Sequence record: LC727699.1
Length of the DNA: 64,000 nt
Reading direction: 5' to 3' (one strand)
Position 1 is the stretch's first letter, and each line of letters starts with the position of its first letter. A program made the translations under genes and the position numbers. The notes under the pieces were generated by a model. That model was not told the origin of the DNA, did no database searches, and worked only from the letters and a program-made list of their open reading frames with translations. Below are positions 4,236-60,953 of the stretch, one piece after another.

Positions 4236-5395
4236 AAGAAGTCAACCTCAAATTCTTCTTCTTCACCAACATCATTTACAACGTTGACCATGTAATCAGG
4301 CTTCTCTTCTTCCTGAGGAGATGCTTGGGTTGATGAAATATCTAGGTAGTCTTCCATATAAAGAAGTGGGTTCTTCTCTGGCCAAACAAAATCAAATCCA
4401 GCTGATTCTTTAAACTCCACTTGATACTGTTCTACAACATCATTTTCAATACTTAGGAATGTTGCTGCGGCATTAGCATTGAAAAGTACCCAGTTAATAA
4501 GTTTAGTCGCATTAACACCAGTTAGTTCACGACCTTCAGAGAATAGATAATTAATCCAGGTAACTTCAGTCTTTACAATTTCCCATAGTAGTTCAATGAT
4601 TTTATCTTTACATTGACTGTAAGCGAGTTTACCGCGTTCAGTTGCCAGTAGTGCACGAATAACTTCTTGTCCATATTGTGCATGGATTTCGAATTCGTCT
4701 TGGGCAATTTTCTTAACAGCGGCTGCAATTTGCTGGAATGCACCAGTACGACCAATAGCAAAGGTTACTGCAAAGGATGCCATGAACTGGATACGTTCTA
4801 GGAAATATAGAGCGATGAAGAACATGAATACTTTATTGTAAAGTTCTTGATCATTGGGTACCTGATTAAGAGCATACGCATGAACTGCGTCATGTGCTTC
4901 ACCCATAGTGCGGGCTACTGCAACCATTCGTTCTTGTGCTTCTTCTACCCTAAGAATTTCGTCTAGAATAACTTTAGGATCTTTAAAGCTATTACGTACA
5001 ATTTCAGAATAAGTTAAAGCATGTACGTCTTCATTATCATTAATACGTACATATCCCGCCCATACTCGTGAATCTGTCATGACAGGTGATAGAATATTAA
5101 CAATGGAACGACTGGCTACAGAGTCAGCTTCCCATTGCCAGGCCAGTGTCTTAATCATCATGTCATAAGTTGATTTATCACACGTTTCAAATTCTACTAG
5201 ACAAGTGGAAAAGTCAAATTCTAGCTCATCCCAATCAAGCATCTTTAGACGCTTATATAGCTCCCACATTTTAGGATAATGAGTGTGGATTGAATCTAGT
5301 AGACCTGGATCATCTCCAAGAATAATTTCCGGTAGATGATAATCACTCTTAGCAACATTGAAGATTTTCTTTGGTAGTTGAGATTTAGTAGACAT
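4232..5395 (-). CDS. nrdB: Ribonucleotide reductase class Ia beta subunit
   Basis: WEADS, EDVHALTY (ExxH plus radical Tyr), LERIQFMASF, DEFEIH; C-terminal Tyr tail. Confidence 0.95.
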   Translation of the reverse strand: MSTKSQLPKKIFNVAKSDYHLPEIILGDDPGLLDSIHTHYPKMWELYKRLKMLDWDELEFDFSTCLVEFETCDKSTYDMMIKTLAWQWEADSVASRSIVNILSPVMTDSRVWAGYVRINDNEDVHALTYSEIVRNSFKDPKVILDEILRVEEAQERMVAVARTMGEAHDAVHAYALNQVPNDQELYNKVFMFFIALYFLERIQFMASFAVTFAIGRTGAFQQIAAAVKKIAQDEFEIHAQYGQEVIRALLATERGKLAYSQCKDKIIELLWEIVKTEVTWINYLFSEGRELTGVNATKLINWVLFNANAAATFLSIENDVVEQYQVEFKESAGFDFVWPEKNPLLYMEDYLDISSTQASPQEEEKPDYMVNVVNDVGEEEEFEVDFL

Positions 5396-10603: not shown

Positions 10604-10680
10604 ATAATACATTCAAACCATTTTAAACAGTATATTACTAACTTGATATTTAACCTTCAATTAATGTAAAAAGGAATCTA
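10604..10680 (+). repeat. Early promoter-leader cassette, copy A
   Basis: 10622-10674 identical to 12473-12525 (53 bp); 10604-10626 identical to 12105-12127 (23 bp); TATATTAC at 10631. Confidence 0.9.
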
Positions 10681-55439: not shown

Positions 55440-55463
55440 AAAAAAATTTGAGATTTATATTAC
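55440..55463 (+). promoter_or_regulatory. Early promoter of the chimallin gene
   Basis: AAAAAAATTTGAGATTTATATTAC, about 70 nt upstream of the ATG. Confidence 0.75.
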
Positions 55464-55535: not shown

Positions 55536-57416
55536 ATGGCTGTTAACGAAAACGAAATCGGCACCGTTCAAACTCAAGCTACCGCTCCGGCTCCGCAACC
55601 CACTGCACAACGTCAAGCTCAACGTCCGGCTGGCGCACCTGGGTCCACTACTGGCATTAACCATCTAATGCGTCGCTCTGGTCGGCTAGATGGCTCTGAT
55701 GCTCGTTCAGCAGATGCCCTACAAGTATTCACTAAAGTAAAAGAAGAAGCAATCCGCCATCAGGACCTACCTGATGACTTCGATATCCATCGTTTCGATC
55801 GCGATGCACAACAAGTGGGTATGGCTGGTCTACTCATTGTTAAACTAGCTAAAGATATCAATGGTTCCATGAAGGCATTCGTTCGTACTCTAGTACTCGA
55901 TAACCTACCTGGTACTCGCATCCGTCCCCGTACCCACAAAATCAACAATGGTCTAACTGATGACATCATTGAAGAGAAGGTACTACCGCGTGATGTATTC
56001 ACTGCTCAATACTGGAGCAAGATCGGCGAGTTCCTACGGAACCGTTACAACATCCCTGGTCTAGAAGTACTATCTGCCGGTCCACGTGCAGTGTATGCTG
56101 ACTTCGACTTCAAAGATGAACTAGCTGTTAAGAACCTACTAGTTGAATCCGTTAATATCTGTGAAGATGCTATTGCGCGTCGTAACAATGAGACTCCGTT
56201 CTCTATTGCGACCCACATCAAAGCAGAAAACGAACAGCTTACCTGCAATCTAGACTACAATGGTATTCCGGTTAAAGATAGCTGTGGTAATCCGATCCGT
56301 TCTGACCTGGTCATCTCCACTAGCCGTGGTAAGAAAACCAACGTACCTGAGAACGAGTTCTATGATACCGATAGCCAGCTAAACCAAGTTAGTCTATTCG
56401 TAGATCTACATTGGACTCCGACCACTGGCCAGCAACAAGGTATGTTTGGCGTAACTCTACCTGGTGCAGTTCTACCTCCGCAGTTCACTCCTTACATCGT
56501 TATCACTGACGTTCGTAAGGCATCCTGGATCCAAGCATGGACTCTAGAAATGTGGCTGTTCGCACTTGGTAATGCGTATCGTGCAACTGCATCCCAGGCA
56601 TGGGCTCGTACTCTAATGCCGAAGATCGCTACTAGCAAGATGCGTGATATTGGTGCACTTGGTTATTACTCAGAGCTAGGTAAAGCGATTGAAACTCGCA
56701 CCGAAGCATTCATGGCAGACGATAGCAACTTCGTAATGCTAATGAACAAGATGGTTAACCAGAACCCTGCATTCCAGATCGATATCGATCCGATGGGTGA
56801 CAACTCTGCTCTTGAGCAGGTAGTCCTAGATGCAGCTGGTGGCGTAAACCAAGCTCGTGCAGTTAGTCTGATCTTCCAAGCTCTAACTAACCTATACGGC
56901 ACTGATTTCCGTCAGTTCTATAATCTAGCTGAAGCTGGTCCGATTATCTTTGACAACCATCATGAAGTAGACCTCGGTCACTACACTGATGAGCATGGTG
57001 AACTAAGCGACCGTCGTGATCTCGACGTTCTAGGTGCCATGAACATGTCTGAAGGTAATGACCAAGAGTGGAAGACCTGGTATGCTACTCAGGTAGGTAA
57101 TGACCACATTGTGCGTCGTATGAATAACAGTAAAGGCTTCGACAAGATGTACCTAGGTAACGTTACCTATACTGGTCGTGCTCGTCGTCTAACCTTTAAC
57201 CCGAAATTCATCACCGCAATGGATGCCGCAGCAGCAGCAGCTGGTGTAACTGTAACCATGGAAAACCTAATTACCAACTTCGGTCAACAGCGCTTCGCTG
57301 GTTACACCGGTATGGGTAACATGGCTGTTTCTGGTAGTGCACAAGTTGGTATGGCTGGCAGCATGGGTCAAACTTACGGCGCTCCTTCCTATAACGCACC
57401 GGGTACCTGGTACTAA
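55536..57416 (+). CDS. chmA: Chimallin, major phage-nucleus shell protein (phiKZ gp54)
   Basis: 626 aa; segments resembling 201phi2-1 gp105 as recalled ([62 protein letters not shown]); next to the nvRNAP subunit. Confidence 0.95.
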
Positions 57417-57425
57417 TAGGAAATA

Positions 57426-57767
57426 CCTCGGTAGATAGGGATGTTAAATAAGTAACATCCCGATTCTAATACTGCGACCCGGTTCACTTCAGTGATAACG
57501 GTTAGGAGTAGGTTCCGTGAAGTAATCGACTAGTGGACTTAGTCTAGGTCGACCTATCACTACACGAGGATGATAGATCACTTAACCGAAAGGAGTTACT
57601 CAAAAGGTGACGTGTGATCAAAAACTACAATGGATGGTAAATGAGACTAGTGCCGGTATGCTACAAAGAAGAGCGGAGGTTAAGCTTTGTAGATGACGCT
57701 AGGCTCGGGCCAGGCTCCGTTGGTGGTCCATTGTAAAAACTGATATAGCGGCTCCTTCGGGGGCCGC
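57426..57767 (+). ncRNA. Candidate multi-domain structured RNA downstream of chmA, ending in a UUCG terminator
   Basis: No ORF; nested long-range helices (see findings); terminator GCGGCTCC-TTCG-GGGGCCGC at 57748-57767. Confidence 0.55.
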
Positions 57768-57809
57768 TTATATCTCCTTTTTTTGTTAATCGATAAATAG
57801 GAGTTTGGT

Positions 57810-58946
57810 ATGGGTCTTTATGCCAAAGTTGTTGATCATAATGAAGTTCATGATCAATTTACGGGTAAACGAATTTATGCCAATGATTACAATACGAGTA
57901 ACTCAGATGAGAAAGAAGAATTTGATAGGCATTTCTATTCTCATTTCCAAGATTCAGAAGCAATTGAAAGTAGTGTAAGCTGTGATTGTCGAGCAATCGA
58001 AGACGCACATAAACTCGGAGTAATCTGTGATATTTGTAATACTCCAGTTGTCAATACTTCTAGCCGTCCTATCGAACCATCAATGTGGGTTCGTACACCA
58101 AAACATGTACGTAGCCTAATTAACCCACGTTTAATCATTATGCTAACCGGATATCTAGTAACTAAAGAATTCGATTTCTTAGCATATCTAACTGATACTT
58201 CTTATCGATACGATGTAGAATCTATTGGTTCTAAAGAAACACGCAGGAAAGTAGATAGGCTACTGCATCGAGGATTTGAAAGAGGATTAAATCACTTCAT
58301 TGATAATTTCAATGAGATCTTCCAATTCCTACTAGATGCAAATATTATCTCTAATAATAAATCCGAATTCGCTCAATTCGTTGCTCAGAATAAAGATAAG
58401 TTATTCCCTAAATATTTACCAGTTCCTTCTAAACTCTGTTTCGTAGCAGAATCAACCACATCTGGTACTTACTTAGATAAACCAATTGAAGCAGCAATTG
58501 ATGCTACCTTAACCTTCGCTAGTATTGATGCATCATCTGTACCACTTAGTCCAATTAAAGCTCAGAATAGGACTATGCGAGGACTAAGACTATATGGCCA
58601 GTTCTACGAGATCTACGCAAAATCACGAATTGCTCAAAAGCCTGGTCTTGCTCGGCGTCACATGTTTGGTGCTCGTCTCAACGCTACGGCACGTGCAGTA
58701 ATCACTTCTATTAGTGACCCGCATGATTATGATGAACTACATATCCCTTGGGGGGTAGGTTGTCAATTATTAAAGTATCATCTAACCAATAAACTAAAAG
58801 CAAAGTTTAACATGACAACTCGTGAAGCATTCTCATTTGTATATGAGAATGTACTTCAATATAACCAAATCATTGCAGATCTATTTAAAGAGCTAATTGC
58901 AGAAGCAGCCCCTTATAAAGGGATGGGTTGTACTTTTCACCGAAAT
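57810..58946 (+). CDS. Non-virion RNA polymerase beta'-N subunit, exon 1 (phiKZ gp55-like)
   Basis: Zn-finger CDC...CDIC; RRHMFGARLNATARAVIT; ends CTFHRN immediately before intron 1. Confidence 0.9.
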
Positions 58947-59251
58947 TAATTTGTATATTAATACTAAATGGTTTCCTTGTAATAGAAATATTACTCGACA
59001 AAACTCCTTTAATTGCTGGGACATCTCAATGAGACAATCAGCAGCGAAGCTTTCCAGAAATGGATTGAACGTTCAACGACTATCGAAAGGCACGAAAGTG
59101 AACCGAGTAGAGTAGAGTCAAGTGACTCGAAATGGGGAGCACCTTACTGGGTAATGCCAAAGGTGAAGATATAGTCTGGTCTGCATGGTGACATGCAGCT
59201 GTCTGTTACTAATAGACGGGATAAGCTTAACGAACTTATCTGAACACAACG
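58947..59251 (+). mobile_element. Group I intron 1 (305 nt, no ORF)
   Basis: P AATTGCTGGGA 59011, Q AATCAGCAGC 59036, R GTTCAACGACTAT 59071, S AAGATATAGTCT 59166; P1 GAAAT/GTTTC with U.G at the splice site; terminal G. Confidence 0.9.
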
Positions 59252-59359
59252 CCAACCCTTCAACGTGGATCCACACAGCAGTTCTTTATTACCAAAGTAA
59301 AAGATGACATTAATGATAATTCTATCAGCATGTCAGTATTATGCTTGAAAGCGCCTAAT
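59252..59359 (+). CDS. nvRNAP beta'-N exon 2 (36 codons, PTLQRGS...LKAPN)
   Basis: Restores RNPTLQRGS (beta' NRxPTLHR-like motif) in frame; absent from the ORF track. Confidence 0.9.
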
Positions 59360-60731
59360 GGACAATTGAATAACTAAATAAGGGTAAAAACAATGGATCA
59401 AAACGGAGTAGTGTCCGTCTTTGATCCGGCTTCATTTAAAATTGAATGGCGGGATATTCCTGGATACTCAGCATATGAAGCTAGTAACCTAGGAACAATT
59501 CGTCATAAGCGGTTAAATAGAATATGTAATTTCTTCCTTACTAAAACATCGATTGGGACATATCTCAATATTGGTGCAAAAAATGATGAAAAAACATCTA
59601 AGAGTAAGGGAGTTCATATATTAATCTGTTTAGCTTTCCATGGTCCATCACCTGGACCAGATTATGAAGTCAATCATAAAGACGGCAACAAACATAATAA
59701 TCTACCATCTAATTTGGAGTGGATGACTCGTGGTGAAAACTTAGAACATGCTTACAAAAATGGATTAAGAAAAGAAAATAGACGAGTAATTGCAACTGAT
59801 GTTACCACTGGTGAAAAGACTACTTATTACTCGATGAGTGAACTTGCTCGGGCATTAGGAGTTAATAAAAATACGGTTTGGGTTATTATACGTGATCATA
59901 AGACTAAGCCGTATAGAAATAGATTCACATTTGAATTTATTACCGGTGAGACTAAGATTGCTGATCGAGATAGTACCAAGACGGTTTATGTTTTAGACTA
60001 TAAGACTAAGACATTGCATGTGTTTCATAACTTAGCAGAAATGGAACTTGCACTAGGTACTAAACGTAATAAAGCCTATTACCATCTAGTTAGAGGTAGT
60101 AAGGAAATCATGGATGGTTTGGTATTCTCATATACCGCTAATCCTGAAGATTTCCCTAAATATACTCAGAAAGAAATTGAAGCCTCATTTGGAAAACCTA
60201 GTAATGGAAAAGGTACTCCAATTGAAGTAACCGACACCATCTTGAACACTACCAAAGTGTATCCGAGTATTCCACACTTTGCAAGAGATGTCGGTATTAA
60301 GCATCCGAATACTGTTCGAAGAGCAATCTTTGAAAAGAATGGAGTGCTTGATAAATACCTTATTAAGTTAATCAAGTCTAGTTCCCCTAATGAGTAATCA
60401 TTGGGATGAGTTCTCTCTAATTGCTGGGATATCCTGTTAAACTAATCTACCACTGCGAGTCGAAAGACAAAGCCAAGGTTTGAAAAAGATTAGGTAGGGC
60501 CAATCAGCAGCCAAGCTCCGTAACATTCCATTTAGGAATAGGAGAAGGTTCAACGACTATTACGGTATCAGGTGCACCGGTCCTAGAAATAGGATGTAGA
60601 GTCAAGTGACTCGAAATGGGAGACACCCCACTCCGAAAGGAAGGGTGAAGATATAGTCTGGTCTTCTAGTGAAAGCTAGAGCTGCACGTAATGGTGCGGG
60701 TATCAATTAACGACTGATACTGAACAATACG
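59360..60731 (+). mobile_element. Group I intron 2 (1372 nt) carrying an HNH endonuclease ORF
   Basis: P 60419, Q 60502, R 60548, S 60648; terminal G at 60731; splicing restores NADFDGD. Confidence 0.9.
59393..60397 (+). CDS. Intron-encoded HNH homing endonuclease (NUMOD4-HNH with C-terminal HTH repeats, I-HmuI-like; phiKZ gp56-like)
   Basis: YEASNLGTIR; HILICLAF; VNHKDGNKHNN..SNLEW.T..EN; repeats YYSMSELARALGV and YPSIPHFARDVGI. Confidence 0.92.
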   Translation: MDQNGVVSVFDPASFKIEWRDIPGYSAYEASNLGTIRHKRLNRICNFFLTKTSIGTYLNIGAKNDEKTSKSKGVHILICLAFHGPSPGPDYEVNHKDGNKHNNLPSNLEWMTRGENLEHAYKNGLRKENRRVIATDVTTGEKTTYYSMSELARALGVNKNTVWVIIRDHKTKPYRNRFTFEFITGETKIADRDSTKTVYVLDYKTKTLHVFHNLAEMELALGTKRNKAYYHLVRGSKEIMDGLVFSYTANPEDFPKYTQKEIEASFGKPSNGKGTPIEVTDTILNTTKVYPSIPHFARDVGIKHPNTVRRAIFEKNGVLDKYLIKLIKSSSPNE

Positions 60732-60953
60732 GCTGATTTTGACGGCGATCAATTGAATCTTACGTTAATGCCTGATGTGTATCTAACTAAAGCAACTGAA
60801 CGCATTGCACCACACACGTGGGTTCTATCTATTGATGAACCACATGAAATCTCAGGTAACCTTGAATTACAGGGTCCTGTTGTAGAAACAATTATTAACT
60901 GGGCACATGAGAAGTATTTACCGCCATTAGAAGAATGGCTAAAAGCAAAATAA
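60732..60953 (+). CDS. nvRNAP beta'-N exon 3 (ADFDGDQLNLTLMPD...; phiKZ gp56.1-like)
   Basis: Catalytic DFDGD motif lies just upstream of the track ORF 60753..60953, in the same frame. Confidence 0.92.
   Translation, partial: ADFDGDQLNLTLMPDVYLTKATERIAPHTWVLSIDEPHEISGNLELQGPVVETIINWAHEKYLPPLEEWLKAK

Follow-up and report, generated by a model that had tools for sequence, protein, structure and literature searches.

The 64,000-nucleotide (nt) stretch from sequence record LC727699.1 analyzed here, hereafter the window, belongs to a phiKZ-like Pseudomonas aeruginosa jumbo phage. phiKZ, the model of the nucleus-forming phages, is a component of phage-therapy cocktails, and its key early gene, chmA, is a preferred target for knock-down. 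In the window, chmA is followed at 57417-57809 by a gap of 393 nt, beyond which lies gp55, a gene of the non-virion RNA polymerase (nvRNAP). This gap is the subject of our study. It almost certainly encodes a genuine, conserved structured RNA, which is an array of three independently folding modules (D1, D2 and D3) between the chmA stop codon and an intrinsic terminator (Table 1). The window chimallin (ChmA) is 99% identical to gp54 of phiKZ and 100% identical to that of Pseudomonas phage sp. LC. When region 57300-57900 was compared by blastn, identity was 100% with the latter phage and 99% with phiKZ (AF399011, 47412-48013), and the source was Pseudomonas in every one of the 57 phage records that matched.

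Table 1. Features of the chmA-gp55 region, in window coordinates (the two strands of a helix are separated by a slash).
Feature	Position	Strand	Remarks
chmA (chimallin, nuclear shell protein)	55536-57416	+	Pfam PF25677 Chimallin_Phikzvirus, 1119.6 bits, full length
D1	57426-57569	+	four-way-junction module; minimum free energy (MFE) fold z = -3.3; pair counts on alignment A8
D1 P1	57427-30/57565-68
D1 P1a hairpin	57432-35/57465-68 and 57438-46/57453-61
D1 P1b	57470-79/57500-10		with UCAC-UUCA-GUGA hairpin 57484-95
D1 P1c	57517-22/57554-60, 57526-31/57547-52, 57534-38/57542-46		long arm
D2	57576-57619	+	small three-way junction; P2 GAUCAC/GUGAUC, P2a CC-GAAA-GG, P2b GUUAC/GUGAC
D3	57627-57734	+	conserved core, about 108 nt, three-way junction; alignments A4 and A7, covariance model R1
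D3 P3.1	57627-34/57727-34
D3 J1/2	57635-42		UGGUAAAU
D3 P3.2	57643-52/57697-706
D3 P3.3	57659-68/57685-95
D3 loop L3	57669-84		16 nt, AAGAGCGGAGGUUAAG
D3 P3.4 hairpin	57710-23		CCAG-GCUCCG-UUGG
D3 L3-L4 kissing pair (candidate)	57674-78 with 57715-19		CGGAG with CUCCG
Intrinsic terminator	57742-57784	+	14-bp stem GAUAUAGCGGCUCC-UUCG-GGGGCCGCUUAUAUC, then UCC and U7
gp55 start	57799-57803 (Shine-Dalgarno AGGAG), 57810 (ATG)	+	nvRNAP beta' N-terminal part, downstream gene

A preliminary description of this DNA, made from the letters alone, had pointed to a GC-rich stretch free of open reading frames (ORFs) between chmA and the nvRNAP gene, and position, sequence and composition are as it described. 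GC content is 44-46% in the gap, versus 26% in the intergenic region upstream of chmA and 37.8% in the whole window. The ORFs that can be drawn in the gap encode only 25-31 amino acids, and none is shared among relatives in position, strand or start codon; judging from the sequences, the gap RNA is non-coding. The whole region folds with an MFE of -124.5 kcal/mol (z = -4.3), and none of 100 shuffled versions folded as well. Taken separately, D2 and D3 gave z-scores of -1.8 each, so that thermodynamics alone is just suggestive for these two modules, while the terminator reached -5.8. The AAAAACT linkers that had been noticed between domains are present at 57620 and 57735; among relatives, they are confined to the genus Phikzvirus. 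Repeat, motif and model searches detected no second copy of the element elsewhere in the window.

Comparison with Pawinskivirus phages shows that the gap is an island of sequence conservation between diverged flanking genes. In global alignments with PA1C, the gap is 82% identical, versus 60% for the last 300-600 nt of chmA and 65% for gp55. When Pawinskivirus genomes (PA1C, PS119XW, HPP-Temi, HHBS36_1 and BRkr) are aligned by blastn, the gap alone is matched (around 81%), and the alignments end at the coding flanks; ChmA of these phages is 49% identical to that of the window at the protein level.

Base pairing in D3 was examined on a model-fitted alignment of 12 distinct sequences (A7) and on an alignment built by MAFFT (A4). 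On A7, 98.9% of the cells are paired and 20 of the 32 pairs are changed on both sides, versus 10.7 ± 2.0 in shuffled alignments (0/500 shuffles); on A4, pairing amounts to 97.0% of the cells, with 17 double-changed pairs versus 8.4 ± 1.8 (0/500). If the partners are slid by 1-3 columns on A7, only 29-54% of the cells are paired. G-U pairs are also conserved in this alignment (GU:12 at columns 92/99, UG:8 at 30/77); together with the fact that model R1 matches the + strand only, they place the gap RNA on the + strand.

Additional copies of D3 come from three contigs of uncultivated Psa21-like phages (L058, L069 and L080). In these copies 37-38 of the 44 unpaired nt are identical to those of the window (around 85%), compared with 26-29 of the 64 stem columns (around 43%). 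The three long helices have been rewritten and remain complementary: ACAAUGGA/UCCAUUGU becomes AACCAGU/ACUGGUU, GAGACUAGUG/CGCUAGGCUC becomes UGGUGUAUUG/CAAUACAUCA (or UGGUGAUGGG/CCCAUCAUCA in L080), and CUACAAAG/CUUUGUAG becomes UCACGA/UCGUGA. Pair changes are found within lineages too (W10-2, FBPa36, PA7 and HPP-Temi, as well as L080 versus L058); hence, D3 covariation does not rest on a single split. Separate MFE folds of L058 and L080 yield the architecture of the window D3. The segments that do not change are J1/2 (UGGUAAAU), the 16-nt loop (AAGAGCGGAGGUUAAG) and CCAGGCUCCGUUGGUGG, and the maintenance of loops while stems vary is the pattern expected of a specific binding site or a tertiary surface. 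CCAGGCUCCGUUGGUGG is able to form a hairpin of 4 bp, and its loop, CUCCG, complements CGGAG of the large loop. Neither this hairpin (P3.4) nor the kissing pair ever varies, which places both outside the reach of covariation, for or against.

Two additional features of D3 were considered and discarded: a K-turn in the internal loop, whose G-A pattern is lost in most sequences, and a small ORF behind GGAGG, whose AUG is ACG in SL2 and Pawinskivirus. A target search with the D3 loop over the whole window matched the element itself only. In bacterial genomes the D3 pattern gave six matches, all attributable to chance (around 10 bits by R1).

D1 and D2 were analyzed on alignment A8, made of phiKZ-like and Pawinskivirus sequences (540 cells). 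Pairing was found in 99.4% of the cells, and six pairs are changed on both sides, versus 3.2 ± 1.0 in shuffles (1/500). In D1 these double changes are U-A to C-G in P1, A-U to U-A in the outer part of P1a, U-A to C-G in P1a and in the outer part of P1c, and A-U to G-C in the middle of P1c in W10-2; in D2, A-U is replaced by G-C in P2b of HPP-Temi (GUUGC/GCAAC). The D1 partners UAGA/UCUA and GUGAAG/CU(N)UCAC are likewise supported by covariation. Phage PhiPA3 keeps all the D1 and D2 helices with a different sequence, as verified by script. Its helices include GGGGUGUACG/CGUACAUCCC, UUAGGC/GCCUAG and GUGGUAGC/GCUAUCAC, a CUC-GAAA-GAG hairpin replaces UCAC-UUCG-GUGA, and around 150 nt have been added inside P1c; P2 is AACCAC/GUGGUU, with two pairs changed on both sides.

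Altogether, the fold of the region and the covariation of D3 and of D1/D2 bear out the earlier proposal of a structured, non-coding + strand RNA with three domains in the chmA 3' untranslated region (3'UTR). The helices listed in that proposal are supported save for three pairings. Two of them, GTAG/CTAC and ATAGG/CCTAT, are broken in Pawinskivirus and W10-2 (seven cells) and show no covariation. The third, ACTTCA/TGAAGT, is paired in phiKZ and Pawinskivirus (A-U, G-U, G-C) but is missing from PhiPA3, which retains the competing UCAC-UUCG-GUGA-type hairpin; this pairing could be coincidental or represent an alternative conformer.

D1 was detected solely in Phikzvirus, Pawinskivirus and PhiPA3, and in IMG/VR its pattern retrieved PA7 and PhiPA3 only. 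The same two phages were the real matches among the 28 given by a D2 motif scan of IMG/VR, the rest being chance matches in coding DNA; a strict D2 pattern had no match in metagenomes. As a side observation, the sequence UAGAUAGG is found at the 5' start of D1 (57432-57439), and a similar one, GUAGAUAAGG or UUAGAUAGG, stands directly 5' of the terminator stem in Pawinskivirus and in the Psa21 clade. They could represent a short direct repeat on either side of the inserted modules, or else be coincidental.

None of the modules was recognized as a known RNA, in agreement with the preliminary description. A gathering-threshold scan of the window with the 4227 models of Rfam 15, which cover riboswitches, ribozymes, RNase P, signal recognition particle RNA, 6S, transfer-messenger RNA (tmRNA), CrcZ, RsmY/Z, ROOL, GOLLD and HEARO, detected three tRNAs and two group I introns, all outside the gap. 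In region 57350-57850, a scan at E ≤ 10 returned 12-16-bit noise only, and the homologous gaps of phiHQ, PhiPA3, Psa21, L058 and L069 had no Rfam match at E ≤ 1. ARAGORN found neither a tRNA nor a tmRNA in 57000-58200.

The terminator, whose UUCG hairpin had been correctly identified after the third domain, starts 7 nt after D3 and folds with -22.4 kcal/mol; its U7 tract begins 3 nt past the stem. It has the GC-rich hairpin and the U tract of an intrinsic terminator, and was not listed by a terminator-finding tool with a stricter spacing rule. Relatives with and without RNA modules share it. We also observed that the terminator is 97% identical in phiKZ, Pawinskivirus and PhiPA3 though their ChmA proteins are 49-66% identical, a degree of conservation far above the needs of a generic hairpin.

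Upstream of chmA, at 55456, there is an early promoter motif, TATATTAC, the extended form of which is absent from 56500-57900, so that none is found between chmA and gp55. The nvRNAP subunits, gp55 included, are early gene products (PMC4666361), and PHIKZ054 has been described as a member of a six-gene operon (PMC8244752). On these grounds gp55 probably depends on read-through of the terminator, and D1-D3 are presumably transcribed as the 3'UTR of chmA within its early operon. Like RNAs derived from 3'UTRs, the gap RNA lies between a stop codon and the parental terminator and lacks a promoter of its own. As to the motif itself, an extended AT-rich version ending in TATATTAC has seven copies on the + strand of the window (10126, 10631, 12482, 33479, 39292, 44475 and 55456), a one-strand arrangement that phiKZ early promoters would be expected to show; identical sequence lies downstream of the copies at 10631 and 12482.

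The organization of the gap was compared in 36 chmA loci from GenBank and IMG/VR. Its length varies between 78 and 874 nt, the minimum being the terminator and a ribosome-binding site. phiKZ-like and Pawinskivirus phages have D1, D2, D3 and the terminator in this order. In phiHQ, an unrelated segment of around 310 nt replaces D1 and precedes D2, D3 and the terminator. PhiPA3 has D1 with the expanded arm, D2, and an unrelated segment in the place of D3 before the terminator. D6 and Noxifer, with gaps of around 80-85 nt, have the homologous terminator and the ribosome-binding site only. In L058, D3 stands alone, directly after chmA and before the terminator; in L069 it is preceded by an unrelated element of around 70 nt; and in L080 (metagenome contig RCUK01000114.1) it occupies the chmA-nvRNAP slot without D1 or D2. 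The first two of these contigs were found by a profile search of chmA loci. L080 was retrieved with a pattern of two invariant D3 loops, which in metagenomes gave this one real new copy and two chance matches. ChmA of the three contigs is 84-86% identical to that of the Pseudomonas syringae phages Psa21 and D6, and 44% to that of phiKZ. Among the 36 loci, model R1 found no D3 in PhiPA3, Psa21, 201phi2-1, Phabio, Viktualia, D6, Noxifer or the other IMG/VR contigs.

This distribution disagrees with the relationships of ChmA. Pawinskivirus ChmA is 66% identical to that of PhiPA3 versus 49% to that of phiKZ; nevertheless, in its RNA Pawinskivirus resembles phiKZ, and no D3 is present in PhiPA3. 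In the Psa21-like clade, D3 is present in the three uncultivated contigs and absent from D6 and Psa21. Because of this disagreement, we conclude that the modules have been exchanged between phages. Jumbo-phage genera have acquired, lost and traded them, with the chmA-nvRNAP gap serving as a cassette slot. D3 is the old core of the element. The initial idea of one large multi-domain RNA holds as far as the three domains are concerned. Their being a single unit does not: L058 and L080 have D3 without the other modules, an unrelated segment takes the place of D1 in phiHQ, and PhiPA3 has another one instead of D3; the element is a mosaic of separately inherited modules.

Additional observations concern the contents of the slot. 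Within the genus Phikzvirus (compared with L043-L047), P3.2 and the internal loop of D3 (57643-57706) exist in two haplotypes, one in LC, phiKZ and FBPa36 and another in PA7, SL2, T2P and W10-2. The latter is the Pawinskivirus form, which points to inter-genus recombination at the locus. A distinct structured module, 'X', is common to the P. aeruginosa phage phiHQ (L006, around 1334-1500) and the P. syringae phage Psa21 (L008, around 4400-4560); the two copies are 73% identical over 156 nt, 11 of 40 predicted pairs are compensatory, and no Rfam match was found. In the Psa21 record, a minus-strand ORF of 80 amino acids is annotated across part of the gap; annotated ORFs are also found in the slot of 201phi2-1 and Phabio. 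In L053, L054, L057, L059, L061, L063, L068 and L075, the space between chmA and the terminator contains unrelated, stably folding inserts of 60-250 nt, some of which are shared (L053 with Viktualia, L061 with L063, L054 with L057). Overall, this slot resembles a hotspot for RNA cassettes. In D6 (L013, 4259-4290), the position that D3 occupies in L058 and L069 contains only a mini-hairpin, ACCA-AUAG-UGGU, which resembles the D3 closing stem without its interior and suggests either a clean loss of D3 or insertion of D3 into a hairpin.

Elsewhere in the window, gp55 (57810-60944) is divided into three exons (57810-58946, around 59240-59371 and around 60732-60944). Two group I introns were detected inside it with Rfam model RF00028, at 58949-59198 (88.9 bits) and 60360-60681 (79.1 bits), and the second one carries an ORF for an HNH+NUMOD homing endonuclease (59393-60397). 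In PhiPA3 and Pawinskivirus the gene is uninterrupted. Three tRNA genes lie on the minus strand at 556-629, 955-1027 and 1040-1121 (RF00005, 63-73 bits).

What might the RNA do? The reading that we favour, with rather less than even confidence, is that of an accessory, factor-binding RNA in the chmA 3'UTR, highly expressed early in infection and acting as a decoy or modulator. Riding on the most abundant early mRNA, the modules would be produced abundantly as early as the first minutes of infection, and would persist as the terminator-ended 3' part of the chmA transcript. They would serve as non-essential binding platforms and not as a structural part of shell assembly, with the invariant D3 loops (UGGUAAAU, GAGCGGAGG and CCAGGCUCCGUUGGUGG) as a putative surface for a host or phage protein or some other factor. 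We consider this the best fit because the modules show a patchy, swapped distribution, are dispensable in relatives and keep invariant loops.

Several considerations weigh against it. Separate accumulation of the 3'UTR and binding of a partner are both predictions. No RNA at this locus is named in the main texts of the phiKZ studies by dRNA-seq, Grad-seq and ONT-cappable-seq, although their supplementary tables might list one. D3 is always 5-15 nt from the terminator, and the next gene is an early one without an early promoter of its own, an arrangement that suits a role in cis no less well. Since the slot accommodates such diverse unrelated inserts, any stable structure could perhaps do. Lastly, the 12 D3 sequences of A7 form two deep groups (phiKZ-like and Pawinskivirus phages on one side, the three Psa21-like contigs on the other) with a few sub-lineages; therefore, many of the covarying cells were inherited together.

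A role in cis might consist of attenuation or antitermination: D3, possibly with D1 and D2, would sense a protein, the phage RNA polymerase or a small ligand, and would thereby set the read-through of the terminator into gp55 and the early genes that follow, tuning the ratio of ChmA to nvRNAP. Both the constant spacing of D3 from the terminator in every D3-bearing lineage and the early expression of gp55 without an intervening early promoter speak for this view, as do the aptamer-like anatomy of D3 (a three-way junction with invariant junctions and loops and covarying stems) and the fact that GGCUCC of a D3 loop repeats the 5' strand of the terminator. We nonetheless regard it as rather doubtful. 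No convincing, mutually exclusive antiterminator was found, nor was an overlap between P1 and the terminator seen on inspection; the sole alternative pairs GGCUCC with the 3' strand of the terminator over 6 bp, in competition with the adjacent 14-bp UUCG hairpin (-22 kcal/mol). In addition, GGCUCC is present in the terminators of PhiPA3, D6 and Psa21, which lack D3, the same operon is expressed in D6 and Noxifer with the terminator alone, and no known riboswitch class matches.

A different possibility, which seems unlikely to us, is that the gap contains a generic spacer whose exact sequence is of little weight, and which either shields chmA mRNA against attack by RNase E and 3'-5' exonucleases or prevents mispairing of the terminator with the coding sequence. 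Such a spacer would account for the many unrelated, stably folding inserts in the slot, for the high GC content and stable folds of the gap, and for a location between a very-high-copy gene and genes needed at a lower level. It would not be expected, however, to keep 37-38 of 44 unpaired D3 nt nearly invariant while the stems are rewritten. Furthermore, the terminator hairpin alone is already a strong 3' block, and an identity of 82%, compared with 60-65% in the flanking genes, indicates sequence-specific constraint or recent transfer.

The ideas put forward in the preliminary description fare worse, and we consider them very unlikely. These were a sponge that would bind RsmA or RsmN by its GGA loops, and a zipcode or scaffold for localizing chmA mRNA or nucleating the shell. 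An invariant GGA does exist in the 16-nt D3 loop (GCGGAGG, 57675-57677), and the RNA is physically a part of the chmA message. However, stems or junctions contain most of the other GGA motifs, PhiPA3 has lost the GGAG motifs of D1 and D2, and there is no Rfam similarity to RsmY/RsmZ. Because D6 and Noxifer lack the modules, an indispensable role in shell-mRNA localization or shell assembly is improbable; nor can the RNA be a general requirement of shell formation, since nucleus-forming relatives do without it.

That the gap holds no RNA element at all, but instead small protein genes, the remnant of a group I intron or of a mobile element, or complementarity due to chance, is hardly credible: several records do annotate 'hypothetical proteins' of 30-60 amino acids in the gap, and the region 1.1-3 kb downstream does contain two genuine group I introns and a gene for an HNH endonuclease, but gap ORFs differ between relatives in position, strand and start codon, stem substitutions are compensatory, the Rfam group I model that scores 79-89 bits on the true introns finds nothing in the gap at E ≤ 10, ChmA and gp55 are complete without gap sequence, and shuffle and slide controls rule out chance. 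A group I intron in the gap was specifically discarded on the lack of an RF00028 match, the full-length match of ChmA to Pfam and the start of gp55 after the gap.

In a more general view, the chmA-nvRNAP gap of nucleus-forming jumbo phages would be a slot for exchangeable RNA 'genes', and D3 a new ligand- or protein-binding class found in these phages only, either a sensor gating read-through into the phage RNA polymerase genes or an abundant early decoy against a host RNA-binding or RNA-targeting factor. We regard it as possible, though somewhat doubtful. Structured RNAs that are conserved in the 3'UTRs of phages or between their cistrons are a known kind of element; D3 has a fair chance of being a new functional class. 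No description of an RNA at this locus was found in the searchable literature or in Rfam, with the proviso that supplementary listings may exist in the phiKZ transcriptome papers or in Ceyssens 2014. An RNA of around 320 nt, supported by covariation and carried by the chmA message, has thus apparently gone unremarked despite three transcriptome studies of phiKZ.

If the RNA regulates read-through into phage RNA polymerase genes, it would control the switch from early to later transcription. In nucleus-forming phages, mRNA is the main phage nucleic acid open to the cytoplasm after the genome has been enclosed, so that RNA-level counter-defence would be a new layer in the biology of these phages. 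A decoy or protective RNA would point to an RNA-level conflict between host and phage at the sole stage of phage exposure. In turn, the mosaic exchange of modules between genera with different Pseudomonas species as hosts attests directly to recombination at the locus. D3 is unusually tractable, being small, having clear invariant loops and occurring naturally with and without its neighbours.

Comparison with known systems reveals partial likenesses. Terminating riboswitches such as the purine 'tuning fork', a three-way junction with kissing loops, resemble D3 in several respects: a junction of around 108 nt, a conserved fold supported by covariation as in riboswitch aptamers, covarying stems, invariant loops, a possible CGGAG:CUCCG pair, and a terminator within around 10 nt followed by a gene. 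In contrast, D3 follows a coding gene instead of lying in a 5' leader, one of its arms is far longer, no antiterminator or Rfam class was found, and some relatives lack it. Small RNAs derived from 3'UTRs, such as 3'UTR_PHIKZ298 of phiKZ and ncRNA1/2 of PAK_P3 (PMC8545117, PMC10914365), also extend from stop codon to terminator, are promoterless and are conserved in related phages. The gap RNA differs from them in its size (around 320 nt plus the terminator), in its multiple domains and in that no processed species has been reported and no single-stranded seed or target has been identified.

The RsmY/RsmZ sponges are, like the gap RNA, non-coding RNAs of Pseudomonas with GGA motifs (high expression being an inference in the case of the gap RNA); they have many GGA hairpin loops, whereas a single conserved loop GGA is found here, with no Rfam match. 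Repetitive extragenic palindromic (REP) elements and intercistronic stem-loops, as in malE-malF, are similarly structured RNAs placed between a highly expressed gene and downstream genes that are less needed. REP elements are, however, simple palindromes repeated in the genome, while D3 has conserved loops and a defined junction and is single-copy in the window. The 3'UTRs of flaviviruses, with their exonuclease-resistant RNAs, dumbbells and 3' stem-loop, and with subgenomic RNAs as decoys, differ in host and nucleases, and exonuclease stalling is a flavivirus feature; by analogy only, they offer a parallel of independent modules that are duplicated, lost and swapped, and for which a decoy function has been proposed. 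Lastly, the put RNA of phage HK022 consists of two short stem-loops that act on the host RNA polymerase; the gap RNA is dissimilar in sequence and structure, and the polymerases concerned are phage-encoded. Both are nevertheless folded phage RNAs upstream of a terminator that downstream genes must read through.

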